The notes beneath the pieces are model-generated. The model was not told where the DNA came from and ran no database searches. It saw only the letters and a program-made list of their open reading frames with translations. Shown in pieces: positions 7,001 through 10,000 of a stretch of 64,000 nt of DNA. Numbering within the stretch: position 1 is the first letter of the stretch; every line of letters starts with the position of its first letter. Position numbers and translations under genes: made by a program. Origin of the DNA: Octopus bimaculoides (Eukaryota); NCBI RefSeq assembly GCF_001194135.2, contig NC_068999.1, positions 25,566,039-25,630,038 of the forward strand, in the 5' to 3' direction.

Positions 7001-10000
7001 TATGCTCATTTTCTAAGGCTTCTTTTCTACATAAAGTGTAATAGTGTGGTGTTAATACAAACATTGTAAATATCCACTCTAGAGTTTATTAATCTCAAAA
7101 TTATCATTCAATACTGATATAGCTTTATTCTATGGAAACAGCTCATTCATAAGGAATTATTATTGCAATAAAAAATGTTTCACCAACATTTTAAAATTCT
7201 GCATCCACATTTGTGTGAAAGTAACCTGTGCAGAATTTTCTAACCTTGACTGTACCTACCCATTATGAAATGTTAGACATTAATGCATTTGGGATTTTAT
7301 TCACTACAGGCTTAATTTTTAAACTGATAAATAAGTCACATTTCATATGTTGTAATGTCAGATTTAAACATTACAAGAAGTCTACAAAATTTCCAAATAT
7401 TTGGATGCTCTAAATTATTGTTATGCTTTTTTGTCTTCAATCTGGATTTAGCTACTTGAAATTATATTTGCATAATCTTTTCTGTTTTTATATCAGGACT
7501 TAGAGGAAAAGATGGATTACCTGGACTACCGGGTATACCTGGAGAAAAAGGAGATAGAGGAATGAAGGGAACTCCAGGATTTGGTATCCCTGGTCGTGAT
7601 GGATCATCTGGAAAAGATGGATTGAATGGATTGTCAGGTCTAAAAGGAGAAAGGGGATTAAAAGGACAACGGGGCCCACCTGGTCAAACGAAAGAAGGAA
7701 ACCCAGGAGCAACTGGTGCAAAAGGTGACAAAGGTAACCGTGGAGTTCCTGGTTCTCCAGGTATTGATGGATTAAATGGATTAAGAGGCTCCAAAGGTTA
7801 GTAAATGATGTTCTACTTTTATACGTTTTTTTATATTATAAACATATAATTTTAAGGTATATTTATAAATAGTGTATAAGCAAGTAAACACTAGCATGGC
7901 TATGTAGTTAAGAAACTTGCTTCAAAAGTATTCTGCAGCATTGGAGGCAAGTCTATCCTATCTTCTGCCATAGCCTCATGCTAACCAATATTTAGTGAGT
8001 AGACTTCAATAGACTGTATGAAAATACGATATGTATGTTTGTGTGCATGTATCATCATCATCATCATTTAACATCTGTTGTCCATGCTGGCATGGGTTGG
8101 CTTGTTTGACCAGGACTGGTAAGCCGAGGGGCTGCACCAGACTTCAGTCTGATTTGGCATGGTTTCTACGGCTGGATGCCCTTCCTAATGCCAACCACTC
8201 TGAGAGTGGTTGGCATTAGGGTATTTTTACATGCCACTGGTATGGGTACCAGTTGCACAACACCAGTACTTGCCATGACTATGGTTTCACTTTGCTTGAT
8301 GGGTCTTCTTCTCAAGCACAGCATATTGCCAAAGGTCTCAGCCATATATACATATGCTCACACACATGTATACATGCACACACACACACATACAAACGTG
8401 CGCATACAAACACACACTTGCACGCACACACACACACACACACACACACACACACACGCAACAGTCATTTTGGCATTGCTAATTTGACACCAACTTATTT
8501 AACAACAAATTTAATATTTCTCATTCACTCTGTCCCTTTCTATTCCTCCCCCTTTCTCTCTCTCACTCTCCCTCTTTCACTTTTTTTCACTCTCCGCATC
8601 AGTATGTATATATTTCTGTGCACTCATGTATGTGTTTGCTTTCAGAGCCAAAACAGATTGAATGTCCAGTTAGCTATACCAAATTGCCTGTGTCCAAACA
8701 ACTGTACTTAATCATCTCAGTTTGACATACATACACATATATATATATATATGGAGGAGTGTATGTGTATGCTGTGTGTGTGCACGCACATGTGAATATA
8801 GACACACACACACCTGTATGTGTGTGTGTGTGTGTGTGCATGTGTGCTGTCTACTTTCTAGTTAAAAATTTATATTAGTTAAAGAACTAGTCAGCTACTG
8901 TTGCTTATTTTTATATATTATATTTATTTCATATCTTAGCTGGTAAAAGATAGAGTCAATAGTTACATATTTCCAATGAGTCAATCACCAGTTCACGGTA
9001 TTTCTGATAGCAGCTGTTACAAAAGAGTAATTTGGTGCTGAACAAATATCACAAAGATCAGTGCTGCTGCAAAAGATGTACACTTATTCCACACACACTT
9101 AAGATCCTTTGACAATGATCTTAAATATATTCATTTTTTTCTACTATCATATCATTAGGTATATTAGACGCAACTCTTTTGGTACCTTCCTTCTATATTA
9201 TGTATGTGCATATGCCATCATTTTTCTTAATGTCTATTTTTCTATGCTTGCATGGGACAGATGAGAGTACATTGAGTAAAGTTGTCTATGGTTGAATGCT
9301 CATCCTACCGCCAATCCCCAAGTGAGGGATTGTTTCAAAGGGAGATAATAATCTCCCAGTCTAATGAAAAACAAACAACTTGGACATGCTTTCATGGTGA
9401 ACTGCAGGCAAAACATGTCATCAGGAAGCCTTTCTACCTAGAATATGGAGAAGGAAAAGACCCCACTACTCAATGTCTAAAAAGTGGATTATCTCCCTTT
9501 GGCTATTGATCACTGGTGACCCTGCCATCCTGTGGGTTCCAATAGGCCAGCAGGAATTTCCTGAAATGTAAACACAGCCTGAAGACCTCTGTTCTGGAGT
9601 TAAGGATGTTCCCTGGGAGTCCTTTAGGATTCTCACCCATTCCACTATGCATAATTCCTGCCAGCCTATGGGATCCCACAGGATGGCAGGGTCACCAGCA
9701 ATCAATAGCCAAAGGGAGACAATCCACTTTGTTGACATTGAGTAGCAGGGTCCTTTCCTCCTCCATATTCTGTTGGCCTTAAGCCAACAAGCTTTCGGGT
9801 CTGATGATATGCCATAAAGCTAAACCCTTTATGGACGTGAAACCTAAGGTAATCCCATAAACCGTGTGCTCCATGACGGCCTAAGGCAGTGTCATTCTTT
9901 TACACATTACCTTCAACCGGACTGCTCATAATTTTCTGAGCTCCTCTCTTCTCTTAATTTCCTTTCTTTCTCTCTCTCCTGCTTTCTGTCTTTGTCACTC

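Follow-up and report, generated by a model that had tools for sequence, protein, structure and literature searches.

For the minimal hammerhead ribozymes of Penelope-like elements (PLEs), cleavage is reported to be undetectable with single motifs and low with dimers (PMC4209133; PMC6765202). For the S. mansoni PLE minimal hammerhead, the single motif was not detectably active and the dimer was weakly active (PMC4209133), and dimeric action of minimal hammerheads is attributed to Lunse et al. 2016, as cited in PMC6765202. Most genomic PLE minimal hammerheads are solitary and lie away from intact elements (PMC4209133). An inverted 5′-truncated copy beside a PLE, with the hammerhead located within the pseudo-LTR, has also been described (PMC8557442). 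Animal retrozymes, in turn, were derived from PLE pseudo-LTRs in a recent preprint (Li et al. 2026). In amniotes, intronic hammerheads are thought to be domesticated retroelement hammerheads (PMC6155905), and cleavage was demonstrated for those of RECK and C10orf118 (PMC6155905, PMC10761166).

Here we analysed a hammerhead motif, HHR1, that is located in an intron of a type IV collagen gene, together with the whole 64-kb stretch of DNA around it (the window). HHR1 is most likely the leftover of a Penelope-like retrotransposon insertion and not a regulator of the collagen transcript.

Results

A sequence-complete hammerhead on the sense strand of a collagen gene

The motif and its host intron are the following:

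7797..12562, + strand: host intron of the type IV collagen gene (GT..AG, Gly codon split)
9797..9855, + strand: HHR1 hammerhead motif (descriptor match; drawn helices)

The + strand encodes a Gly-X-Y collagen gene, in which a type IV C4/NC1 domain was found (Pfam E=1.7e-67). The intron proposed around HHR1 in the preliminary description was confirmed, with GT at 7797 and AG at 12561-12562, and the data support HHR1 as part of the transcribed collagen pre-mRNA. The intron is crowded with interspersed repeats and contains an assembly gap (10499-10571). When searching for orthologues with the NC1 domain, the best match was 80-81% identical, the contigs being cDNA-like or unrelated, and neither a close relative nor a genomic locus fit for use was found. 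The 28-kb contig L001 turned out to be a compact, unrelated eukaryotic scaffold.

In helix I of HHR1, GGGU (9797-9800) pairs with AUCC (9852-9855) as G-C, G-C, G.U and U-A. The core box CUGAUGA (9801-9807) is followed by the unpaired U9808, located between A9 and 10.1. The base of helix II consists only of A-U, U.G and G-C (9809-9811 with 9836-9838) with A9835 bulged, so that the 10.1-11.1 pair is A-U (A9809-U9838) instead of the usual G-C. The outer part of helix II is formed by 8 perfect bp between CCAUAAAG (9812-9819) and CUUUAUGG (9827-9834), closed by the loop CUAAACC. Behind it, GAAA (9839-9842) leads into helix III (ACC/GGU, 9842-9844 with 9848-9850, loop UAA), and GUA (9849-9851) places A17 at 9851, with a predicted cut at 9851/9852. 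HHR1 thus has CUGAUGA, GAA at 9839-9841, the A9842-U9850 pair and A9851 (H17 not G), from which the three helices I, II and III can be drawn, helices I and III with low predicted probability. The core, the GUA, the 8-bp outer helix II and the 4-bp helix I with one G-U had all been noted before and were recovered at the same positions. Judged by its letters, the motif is supported as a sequence-complete hammerhead of type I topology. The caution attached earlier to the short helix I and the unpaired U was apt, except that the unpaired U is a family trait and no defect.

Our own descriptor found two complete hammerheads in the window, HHR1 and one at 59576-59504. As the latter is on the minus strand, HHR1 is indeed the sole sense-strand hammerhead within the collagen gene, as had been proposed.

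HHR1 is embedded in a foldback with a degenerate mirror copy

Around HHR1 we found an inverted duplication and a short direct repeat:

9375..9860, no strand: foldback (inverted duplication) of ~490 bp, with HHR1 at the outer end of the right arm (repeat analysis, folding)
9440..9558, no strand: best-conserved part of the left arm, 89% complementary to 9653-9771
9653..9771, no strand: best-conserved part of the right arm of the inverted repeat
9378..9431, − strand: degenerate mirror hammerhead in the left arm (core frame, mirrored position)
9867..9945, + strand: 79-nt direct repeat, copy 1, just 3′ of HHR1 (81% identity, spacing 150)
10017..10095, + strand: 79-nt direct repeat, copy 2, partner of 9867-9945

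Between the arms, complementarity reaches 89% across 119 nt and 75% across 340 nt, and as sense RNA the foldback is predicted to form one long hairpin (MFE -248 kcal/mol, z = -20). The mirror hammerhead lies on the opposite strand, 377 nt from HHR1. Its minus strand reads CUGAUGA (9424-9418), C, AUG, a 17-nt insert, CAU, GAAA (9393-9390) and GCAUGUCC, and it has the frame CUGAUGA-N-AUG...CRU-GAAA in common with HHR1. Helix III, the cleavage site and helix I of the mirror copy are all imperfect. The two arms carry unrelated helix II inserts, and the arm-to-arm alignment across the hammerhead itself, beyond the conserved arms, was not significant alone. The 10.1-11.1 pair is A-U in the mirror copy too, where the unpaired base is C9417; the A-U pair was therefore apparently present in the ancestral element already and not acquired by recent mutation.

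No head-to-tail tandem is present at this locus, only the 79-nt direct repeat. Both copies of this repeat start with a CCTAAGG box, which resembles the helix III segment of HHR1.

A second hammerhead-bearing repeat in the window

A related repeat is located ~5 kb downstream of the collagen stop codon:

59274..60235, no strand: second hammerhead-bearing repeat, palindrome plus partial tandem (repeat analysis)
59504..59576, − strand: HHR2L, related hammerhead, better preserved (descriptor, folding)
60015..60087, + strand: HHR2R, inverted partner with an inactivating G12-to-A change (CAAAAC) (sequence)

It comprises an 882-bp palindrome (59354-60235, 82%) and a partial tandem, in which 59274-59373 corresponds to 59726-59824 (92%, unit ~452 bp). 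In HHR2L, helix I has 6 bp, G10.1-C11.1 is present, and a 10-nt stretch, ACCUAUAGGU, is perfectly palindromic. Its predicted MFE structure is the hammerhead fold (-16.3 kcal/mol), and its predicted homodimer is a double hammerhead. HHR1 and the two hammerheads of this locus have the same 3′ half and differing helices I and II that still pair, a pairing that is demanded by the descriptor. A MAFFT alignment of the four hammerheads was wrong because helix II differs in length and sequence. Two of the four copies are dead (the mirror copy and HHR2R with G12A), which fits neutral decay.

Around both loci, no Pfam domains were found in foldback ORFs or in apparent TE-like fragments picked out by eye. 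Furthermore, exact and degenerate DNA patterns for copies of the HHR1 element gave 0 matches in metagenome and viral contigs, and a spurious ORF spanning the inverted repeat, used as a probe for family copies, found no homologue.

An endonuclease remnant in the same intron and hammerheads beside its homologues

Further downstream in the host intron, two features were found:

11058..11090, no strand: (TA)n microsatellite upstream of the endonuclease remnant (repeat scan)
11375..11860, + strand: remnant of a GIY-YIG endonuclease, decayed and interrupted by several stop codons (tblastn E 1e-9 to 4e-18)

The remnant lies 1.5 kb downstream of HHR1 on the same strand and in the same intron, beyond the assembly gap. 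It has a CxCX5C linker (CSCRVYLEC), VIY...YIG and R..H, whereas a Cys pair is absent from the GIY-to-YIG interval. This fits the pattern of the 'Hydra' clade of PLEs with a C-terminal endonuclease, an assignment by motifs taken from the text of PMC8557442 rather than by phylogeny. For PLEs of this clade (TA)n is the preferred target (PMC8557442). No formal hammerhead was found 3′ of the remnant, and no RT or endonuclease ORF was found contiguous with HHR1. A stretch at 12269-12284, GAAACCTTATAGATAT, which is 2 edits away from the family signature, was rejected, as such matches occur 1.55 times per shuffled window.

In outside contigs with homologous endonucleases, hammerheads of the HHR1 build are located ~65 nt past the stop codon. 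One contig (L002) carries three such hammerheads in a 2.5-kb tandem, each followed by the next ORF with an RWK motif, and in another (L006) the hammerhead is followed by (TA)n. The plan in both is AGUCU, CUGAUGA, U, a 6-7-bp helix II, GAA, a 3-4-bp helix III, GUA and a 5-bp helix I, the U following A9 as in HHR1.

A probable Penelope-like origin

Direct observation covers HHR1 itself, its foldback and its related copies, as well as the PLE endonuclease remnant and the same-build hammerheads beside homologous endonucleases elsewhere; a PLE origin of the HHR1 copy is what we infer. In our view HHR1 is probably the hammerhead of a PLE, or of a retrozyme-type derivative, present in two truncated head-to-head copies and now an inert passenger. 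The source would have been a decayed Penelope-like retroelement or a non-autonomous derivative of the retrozyme type, of which two 5′-truncated copies may have been inserted head to head into the collagen intron. In elements of this kind the type-I minimal hammerhead is located near the 3′ end of the unit, and it may process the multimeric transcript of the element by pairing with a second copy, the palindromic helix III giving a double hammerhead. At the collagen locus only one sense copy is left, its partner arm being on the opposite strand and degenerate. In the collagen pre-mRNA the upstream arm would be made first, pair with the downstream arm and lock CUGAUGA in a hairpin of ~400 nt. With one sense copy left and its CUGAUGA locked in this way, HHR1 would be intact in sequence and functionally inert, with no measurable cut in the collagen transcript.

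Alternatively, the repeat may be a mobile element other than a PLE, for example a foldback/MITE-type DNA transposon with a hammerhead captured by its terminal inverted repeats, or a SINE like Sm-alpha of Schistosoma. The palindromic ~490-bp unit has no ORF, the 3′ region of the endonuclease remnant shows no significant nucleotide similarity to the HHR1 and HHR2 elements, and no PLE reverse transcriptase was seen in the 64-kb window, all of which would agree with such an element. However, a search for a tRNA-like sequence, as in a tRNA-derived SINE, found none, and neither a target-site duplication nor defined terminal inverted repeat ends were identified for the HHR1 element. Moreover, the hammerheads face outward from the centre, as would two 5′-truncated retroelement 3′ ends according to the PLE description (PMC8557442), and HHR1 has traits specific to PLE minimal hammerheads (PMC4209133). 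The preprint cited above would also lead from retrozymes back to PLE pseudo-LTRs. We therefore consider an element of another kind unlikely.

HHR1 is hardly a chance look-alike

An AT-rich intron could also contain CUGAUGA, GAAA and short complementarity without any ribozyme ancestry. With a relaxed descriptor, 0.12 motifs were found per dinucleotide-shuffled window, a rate that would leave room for such a look-alike, but the expectation falls to 0.023 when helix III has at least 3 bp. Taken alone, the HHR1 motif is only moderately improbable by chance. For the isolated segment, the MFE does not fall significantly below that of shuffles (z = -1.4), and the non-canonical 10.1-11.1 pair would likewise be expected of a fortuitous match.

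The same could be said of the Rfam searches with Hammerhead_1, _3, _II, HH9, HH10 and RAGATH-1-HH, in which no hammerhead was found at the gathering score in the whole window, nor at E<=10 in three sub-regions including slices of 701 nt and 84 nt. However, the well-folding copy at 59576 was missed too, with only 17 bits against RAGATH-1-HH; the negative result for HHR1 is therefore weak and insensitive.

What speaks against chance is the 3′ half. The signature AAACCUA(0-2 nt)AGGUA has 3 occurrences in 128 kb (both strands of the window), each directly behind CUGAUGA and a helix II, and so HHR1 is non-random. Its 3′ half (GAAACCUA..AGGUA) recurs only in the two other window hammerheads at 59.5-60.1 kb; this 14-nt signature is thus common to two unquestionable hammerheads and found nowhere else in the window. 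In addition, the frame of the core is mirrored on the other foldback arm, although exact CUGAUGA occurs in the window at only 1.3e-4 per position per strand. The descriptor, moreover, demands neither the 8-bp extension of helix II nor the near-palindrome in helix III. Altogether, a coincidental origin of the motif appears quite improbable.

Predicted folding disfavours cleavage of the collagen transcript

The preliminary description had proposed that HHR1 could cut the nascent collagen transcript. In folding predictions the hammerhead fold of isolated HHR1 (-9.5 kcal/mol) is a minority conformer compared to the MFE structure (-11.4 kcal/mol), with p ~0.14 for helices I and III, and in every genomic context tested helix I had p ~0. 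When the upstream arm was included, CUGAUGAUAUG (9801-9811) was predicted to pair with 9414-9424 in the z = -20 hairpin. The helix III segment ACCUAAGGU is self-complementary at 8 of 9 positions, and in the predicted MFE structure of the HHR1 homodimer an extended helix III forms and helix I does not. Loop-loop contacts are impossible, since the 4-bp helix I is open and there is no loop 1. Cutting of the nascent transcript thus finds no support: the fold is predicted to be disfavoured with the core sequestered by the upstream arm and, by analogy, published PLE minimal hammerheads have no detectable single-motif cleavage. From these thermodynamic predictions and the published assays of other PLE hammerheads, we infer that HHR1 is inactive, while co-transcriptional folding or chaperones could allow some cleavage.

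These results bear on the view that HHR1 is an exapted regulatory ribozyme, which would cut the collagen IV pre-mRNA during its synthesis, between exons 5 and 6, and so modulate splicing or output, like the hammerheads of RECK, CTCL and DTNB in amniotes. The core, the GUA site and the three drawn helices are intact, while the mirror copy is decayed, and HHR1 is sense-oriented within its intron; amniote intronic hammerheads are themselves thought to stem from retroelements (PMC6155905). On the other hand, by our estimate ~13 core bases survive by chance in roughly 1/4-1/2 of copies at the 11-25% arm divergence. HHR1 is embedded in a foldback repeat, matches neither Rfam HH9/HH10 nor another hammerhead model, and has an open 4-bp helix I without loop 1 and A-U at 10.1-11.1. 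Furthermore, its fold is predicted to be disfavoured with the core sequestered in the sense transcript, the second sense copy for dimer formation is absent, and the PLE minimal hammerhead that was tested as a monomer was not detectably active (PMC4209133). Exaptation of HHR1 is therefore very unlikely. A still more specific scenario is likewise very unlikely, in which a retroelement-derived minimal hammerhead was co-opted in an invertebrate type IV collagen gene and would be sequestered by the foldback in most transcripts. Remodelling of the hairpin, for instance through helicases or A-to-I editing of its double-stranded arms, would then let the ribozyme fold and cut the nascent intron.

Discussion

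According to our analysis, HHR1 is most likely an ordinary transposon relic. Sequence-intact hammerheads in animal introns are usually PLE or retrozyme passengers, which calls for caution, and orientation of a hammerhead with the pre-mRNA is no evidence of function. Cleavage by HHR1 in vivo would make it one of the rare cases of ribozyme domestication in a structural gene of an invertebrate, but our results give no hint of this. Likewise, if co-option were true, the motif would act as a conditional brake on collagen IV output, an invertebrate counterpart of RECK with an RNA-structure switch. What the window does offer is a compact illustration of PLE biology, with head-to-head truncated copies, tandem-plus-inverted arrays, stages of decay and a Hydra-type remnant by (TA)n.

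Comparison with known hammerhead systems

The amniote intronic hammerheads (HH9/HH10; RECK, CTCL/C10orf118 and DTNB) resemble HHR1 in being of type I, on the sense strand of an intron and of probable retroelement ancestry. However, HH9/HH10 are ultraconserved among species and form tertiary contacts between their loops (PMC6155905, PMC10761166), whereas HHR1 has no loop 1, gives no match to RF02275 or RF02277, is part of a repeat and, by prediction, does not fold. The RECK-type analogy drawn earlier finds no support for a repeat-embedded motif of PLE minimal architecture that has neither the closed helix I nor the loop-loop contacts of fast natural hammerheads.

The animal non-LTR retrozymes (Cervera and de la Pena 2020, PMC7229834; Li et al. 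2026 preprint) are likewise ORF-less, AT-rich hammerhead repeats of a few hundred bp. As ~42-44% of Xenopus retrozyme copies are intronic, an intronic copy such as HHR1 is unremarkable. The ~452-bp partial tandem of the 59.3-60.2 kb locus is a retrozyme-like feature. In retrozymes, 170-450-bp units that each contain a type I hammerhead are repeated head to tail, whereas the HHR1 locus has no tandem. The interacting loops and the canonical lengths of helix I (6 bp) and helix II (4 bp) in retrozymes are likewise absent from HHR1.

The Hydra-clade PLEs (Craig et al. 2021, PMC8557442; contigs L002 and L006) have hammerheads of the HHR1 plan behind the endonuclease, with helix sequences in L002 and L006 that are unrelated to those of HHR1. 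PLE hammerheads are found within the pseudo-LTR, or at the 3′ end, of units that encode RT and GIY-YIG endonuclease. No RT-EN ORF adjoins HHR1, and the decayed endonuclease 1.5 kb downstream on the same strand shows no nucleotide continuity with it. Compared to the PLE minimal type-I hammerheads (Cervera and de la Pena 2014, PMC4209133), HHR1 differs in its A-U pair, as PLE hammerheads are reported to keep G10.1-C11.1 (PMC4209133), and in its longer helix III (3 bp and a triloop), the strictest 'min-HHR' having 0-2 bp. In the remaining traits HHR1 is alike. The open helix I has 4-5 bp in the PLE motifs and 4 bp in HHR1, and both have an unpaired base between A9 and 10.1 (PMC4209133). Helix II is enlarged (6-8 bp in PLE minimal hammerheads; 3 bp, a bulged A and 8 bp in HHR1), with a bulge as in the D. 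virilis variant (PMC4209133). Helix III is short, with a near-palindromic segment formed by 15.x-16.x and loop 3. Finally, paired PLE motifs on opposite strands are located 100-700 bp apart (PMC4209133), and HHR1 and its mirror copy, at 377 nt, fall within this range.

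HHR1 lies in an intron of a type IV collagen gene

Gly-X-Y exons were found on the + strand from 983 to 51975, and the last two exons of the gene code for a C4/NC1 domain (Pfam PF01413, E=1.7e-67), which therefore identifies it as a type IV collagen gene. The protein collection contained no close orthologue of this domain. The best NC1 homologue was just 80-81% identical, and the best named homologues were alpha-2(IV)-like chains of arthropods and vertebrates (70-78% identity). The intron carrying the hammerhead motif HHR1 (9797-9855, + strand) starts with GT at 7797 and ends with a pyrimidine tract and AG at 12561-12562, so the preliminary description is correct on where the intron lies and on HHR1 being in sense orientation.

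Features of the collagen gene and of the HHR1 intron
9867-9945 and 10017-10095: 79-nt direct repeat 3′ of HHR1 (81% identity, 150-nt spacing)
11058-11090: (TA)n tract
~11375-11860, + strand: decayed GIY-YIG endonuclease remnant, in the HHR1 intron and on its strand; sole copy in the window
52775-52990 and 54149-54472, + strand: last two exons, coding for NC1 (C4); stop codon at ~54470

HHR1 comprises 59 bases, GGGU/CUGAUGA/U/AUG-CCAUAAAG-CUAAACC-CUUUAUGG-A-CGU/GAA/ACC-UAA-GGU/A/AUCC. The elements reported before are all present in the sequence, namely the full core, the GUA triplet (cleavage predicted after 9851), an outer helix II of 8 perfect base pairs, a helix I of 4 bp including one G·U pair, and an unpaired U after A9. 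Absent from that report were the base of helix II, which consists of A-U, U·G and G-C only, a bulged A at 9835, and the 10.1-11.1 pair, which is A-U versus the usual G-C.

The remaining intron is crowded with interspersed repeats common to other introns. A repeat of ~380 bp at 10594-10967 recurs with 75% identity at 53571-53950, in the intron between the NC1 exons, and a short interspersed family occupies at least six places (8051-8345, 14266-14551, 18345-18500, 33374-33513, 38997-39063 and 63205-63363; 73-87% identity, both orientations, mostly in collagen introns). LINE-type reverse-transcriptase fragments lie at 45370-46176, 62014-62184 and 63667-63999; RVT_1 matches the ORF at 45370-46101 weakly, and identity in tblastn with protein query P0121 rises to 85% at 63667-63996. 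The LINE RT ORF has just two database relatives, whose bacterial labels probably reflect contamination. There are seven assembly gaps (N runs at 10499-10571, 17383-17767, 24090-24171, 43167-43176, 50596-50605, 55192-55398 and 62839-62973), several flanked by microsatellites. The first, 640 nt 3′ of HHR1 and inside its intron, hides the true insertion structure there.

Two palindromic hammerhead loci

We searched the window with a descriptor (CUGANGA, then 0-1 extra base, a helix II with 3 bp or more, GAAA, A15.1...U16.1-H17, and a helix I with 4 bp or more) and obtained exactly two complete hammerheads, HHR1 and one at 59576-59504 on the minus strand. The latter, HHR2L, belongs to a locus at 59274-60235, ~5 kb 3′ of the collagen stop codon, that forms an 882-bp palindrome (82-88% between arms) with one outward-pointing hammerhead per arm. 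It also contains a partial tandem, 59274-59373 being 92% identical to 59726-59824, which gives a unit of ~452 bp. In HHR2L, helix I is 6 bp long, G10.1-C11.1 is present and ACCUAUAGGU makes a perfect palindrome of 10 nt; the predicted MFE fold of this copy is the hammerhead (-16.3 kcal/mol), and its homodimer is predicted to form a double hammerhead. In the right-hand copy, HHR2R (60015-60087), G12 is changed to A (CAAAAC).

HHR1 itself is located at the right-arm outer end of an inverted duplication whose arms, 9440-9558 and 9653-9771, show 89% complementarity (BLAST palindrome 9440-9771 at 75%). Just beyond the left arm, the minus strand carries a degenerate mirror copy, CUGAUGA (9424-9418)-C-AUG-17 nt-CAU-GAAA (9393-9390)-GCAUGUCC, which has the frame CUGAUGA-N-AUG...CRU-GAAA in common with HHR1. 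Its helix II insert is unrelated to that of HHR1, its helix III, cleavage site and helix I are imperfect, and local alignment of the arms across the hammerhead part was not significant on its own. The argument for a mirror copy rests on the exact heptamer CUGAUGA at the expected place, a sequence with a frequency of 1.3e-4 per position and strand in the window. Two of the four copies in the window are thus already dead, as neutral decay would give, and the 59274-60235 locus preserves the hammerhead better than the HHR1 locus. Both copies of the 79-nt direct repeat open with CCTAAGG, a box that resembles helix III of HHR1. This heptamer occurs four times in 350 nt (9843, 9880, 10030 and 10181); one occurrence is helix III of HHR1, two mark the direct-repeat starts, and the recurrent boxes may be remnants of more hammerhead 3′ halves.

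Probable link to Penelope-like elements

Minimal type-I hammerheads of Penelope-like elements (PLEs) were characterised by Cervera and de la Pena, who described 'dual min-HHRs' ~100-700 bp apart on opposite strands and found most copies to be solitary, probably from truncated PLEs (PMC4209133). According to Craig et al., PLE insertions are partial tandems that create pseudo-LTRs, often with an inverted 5′-truncated copy beside them, the hammerheads being located towards the 3′ end, within the pseudo-LTR (PMC8557442). Two 5′-truncated copies inserted head to head would yield outward hammerheads round a palindromic centre, exactly as at both loci.

The GIY-YIG remnant had 20 matching proteins in an exhaustive HMMER search, and tblastn of these proteins hit one place in the window only, 11375-11860 (E 1e-9 to 4e-18). 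Pfam did not recognise this region. The alignment revealed a CxCX5C linker (CSCRVYLEC), VIY...YIG, R..H and, in decayed form, the counterparts of CxxC-E and CxH, with neither a cysteine pair between GIY and YIG nor a CCHH motif. This combination is that given for the 'Hydra' clade of C-terminal-endonuclease PLEs, whose short members possess canonical hammerheads, target (TA)n for insertion and have molluscs among their host phyla (PMC8557442).

Furthermore, two outside contigs (L002 and L006; ENA ERZ26693861) encode homologous endonucleases with hammerheads ~65 nt after the stop codon. L002 contains three (706-770, 3293-3357 and 5734-5796) in PLE-like tandem units of ~2.5 kb, each followed by the next ORF with an RWK motif. 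Their sequence is AGUCU/CUGAUGA/U/UUUUUAG...CUAAAAA/U/GAA/ACAA-AC-UUGU/A/AGACU, and the MFE structure is the hammerhead fold. In L006 a similar motif at 4777-4838 is followed by (TA)n. The strict descriptor overlooked these hammerheads because of a U·U at the base of helix II. They share one plan with HHR1 (U after A9, long helix II, GUA), with a helix I of 5 bp and a helix III of 3-4 bp in the contigs.

HHR1 is most probably a PLE-type minimal hammerhead, and a slightly atypical one; it lacks G10.1-C11.1, and no flanking RT-EN ORF adjoins it. Descent from some other mobile element is unlikely. It would fit the lack of direct continuity, and of significant nucleotide similarity, between the HHR1 or HHR2 elements and the 3′ region of the remnant. 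No formal hammerhead was found 3′ of the remnant. On the same strand, ~400 nt after it, GAAACCTTATAGATAT at 12269-12284 is two edits from the 3′-half signature of the window hammerheads, which is suggestive of a dead hammerhead, although a match of this quality would be expected by chance in a window of this size.

HHR1 and chance

Dinucleotide-preserving shuffles of the window gave 0.12 descriptor motifs per shuffle, or 0.023 with helix III of at least 3 bp, so that HHR1 by itself is only moderately improbable. Rfam yielded no hammerhead match for HHR1, even when a slice of 84 nt was scanned at E<=10. This negative carries little weight because Rfam also misses the copy at 59576, whose MFE structure is a textbook hammerhead. 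The observation that decides the question, over descriptor rate or Rfam, is the shared 3′ half AAACCUA(0-2 nt)AGGUA. On both strands of the window it occurs three times (9840, 59522 on the minus strand, and 60069), in every case directly 3′ of a CUGAUGA box and closed helix II, which argues that HHR1 is, on this signature, a relative of the two other hammerheads and no accident. A chance look-alike, for which the shuffle rate and the Rfam result might speak, is accordingly improbable.

Predicted fate of HHR1 in the collagen pre-mRNA

In isolated HHR1 the hammerhead fold reached -9.5 kcal/mol versus -11.4 for the MFE, with helix I and III pair probabilities of ~0.14, since GGGU prefers the ACCU of helix III. 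The helix I probability was 0 in the contexts 9760-9900 and 9700-9950. When the upstream arm was included (9350-9900 and 9300-10000), CUGAUGAUAUG at 9801-9811 paired with 9414-9424, which left nothing of HHR1 but the apical hairpin of 8 bp. For the 486-nt foldback the MFE is -248 kcal/mol, which lies 20 standard deviations under that of shuffled sequences. Because transcription reaches the left arm first, the hairpin can close while the right arm is being made; the right arm would then pair with the earlier one and mask HHR1. In the sense transcript, foldback 9375-9860 is predicted to be double-stranded almost without interruption over ~400 nt (z = -20), and such RNA could plausibly undergo A-to-I editing or be processed into small RNAs, independent of the hammerhead.

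The HHR1 intron contains no second sense-strand hammerhead copy for a dimer, which the minimal class is thought to need. Only fast-cleaving intronic ribozymes are known to disturb co-transcriptional processing. For the minimal PLE hammerhead of S. mansoni, assays of a single motif detected no cleavage, and dimers or trimers cleaved at a low level (PMC4209133; review PMC6765202). The earlier proposal that HHR1 could cut the nascent transcript is not supported by our analysis, in which structure predictions and analogy with assayed PLE hammerheads point to masking of a barely active type. Introns frequently harbour copies of hammerhead-bearing retroelements, and 42-44% of the retrozyme copies of Xenopus overlap an intron. 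A co-opted regulatory ribozyme, in keeping with the intact core and sense orientation, is highly improbable in view of the predicted masking. We consider it likely that HHR1 marks a decayed retroelement insertion, its hammerhead fortuitously intact in sequence and sense-oriented, but structurally masked and of a type barely active alone.

Comparison with known hammerheads

HHR1 is not a conserved intronic hammerhead of the HH9/HH10 type; no model recognises it, loop 1 is missing, and it forms part of a repeat. It is not a strict retrozyme either, because a head-to-tail tandem is absent at its locus, whereas the 59.3-60.2 kb locus comes close to that definition. With the minimal hammerheads of PLEs (PMC4209133), HHR1 shares every listed trait but the conserved G10.1-C11.1.
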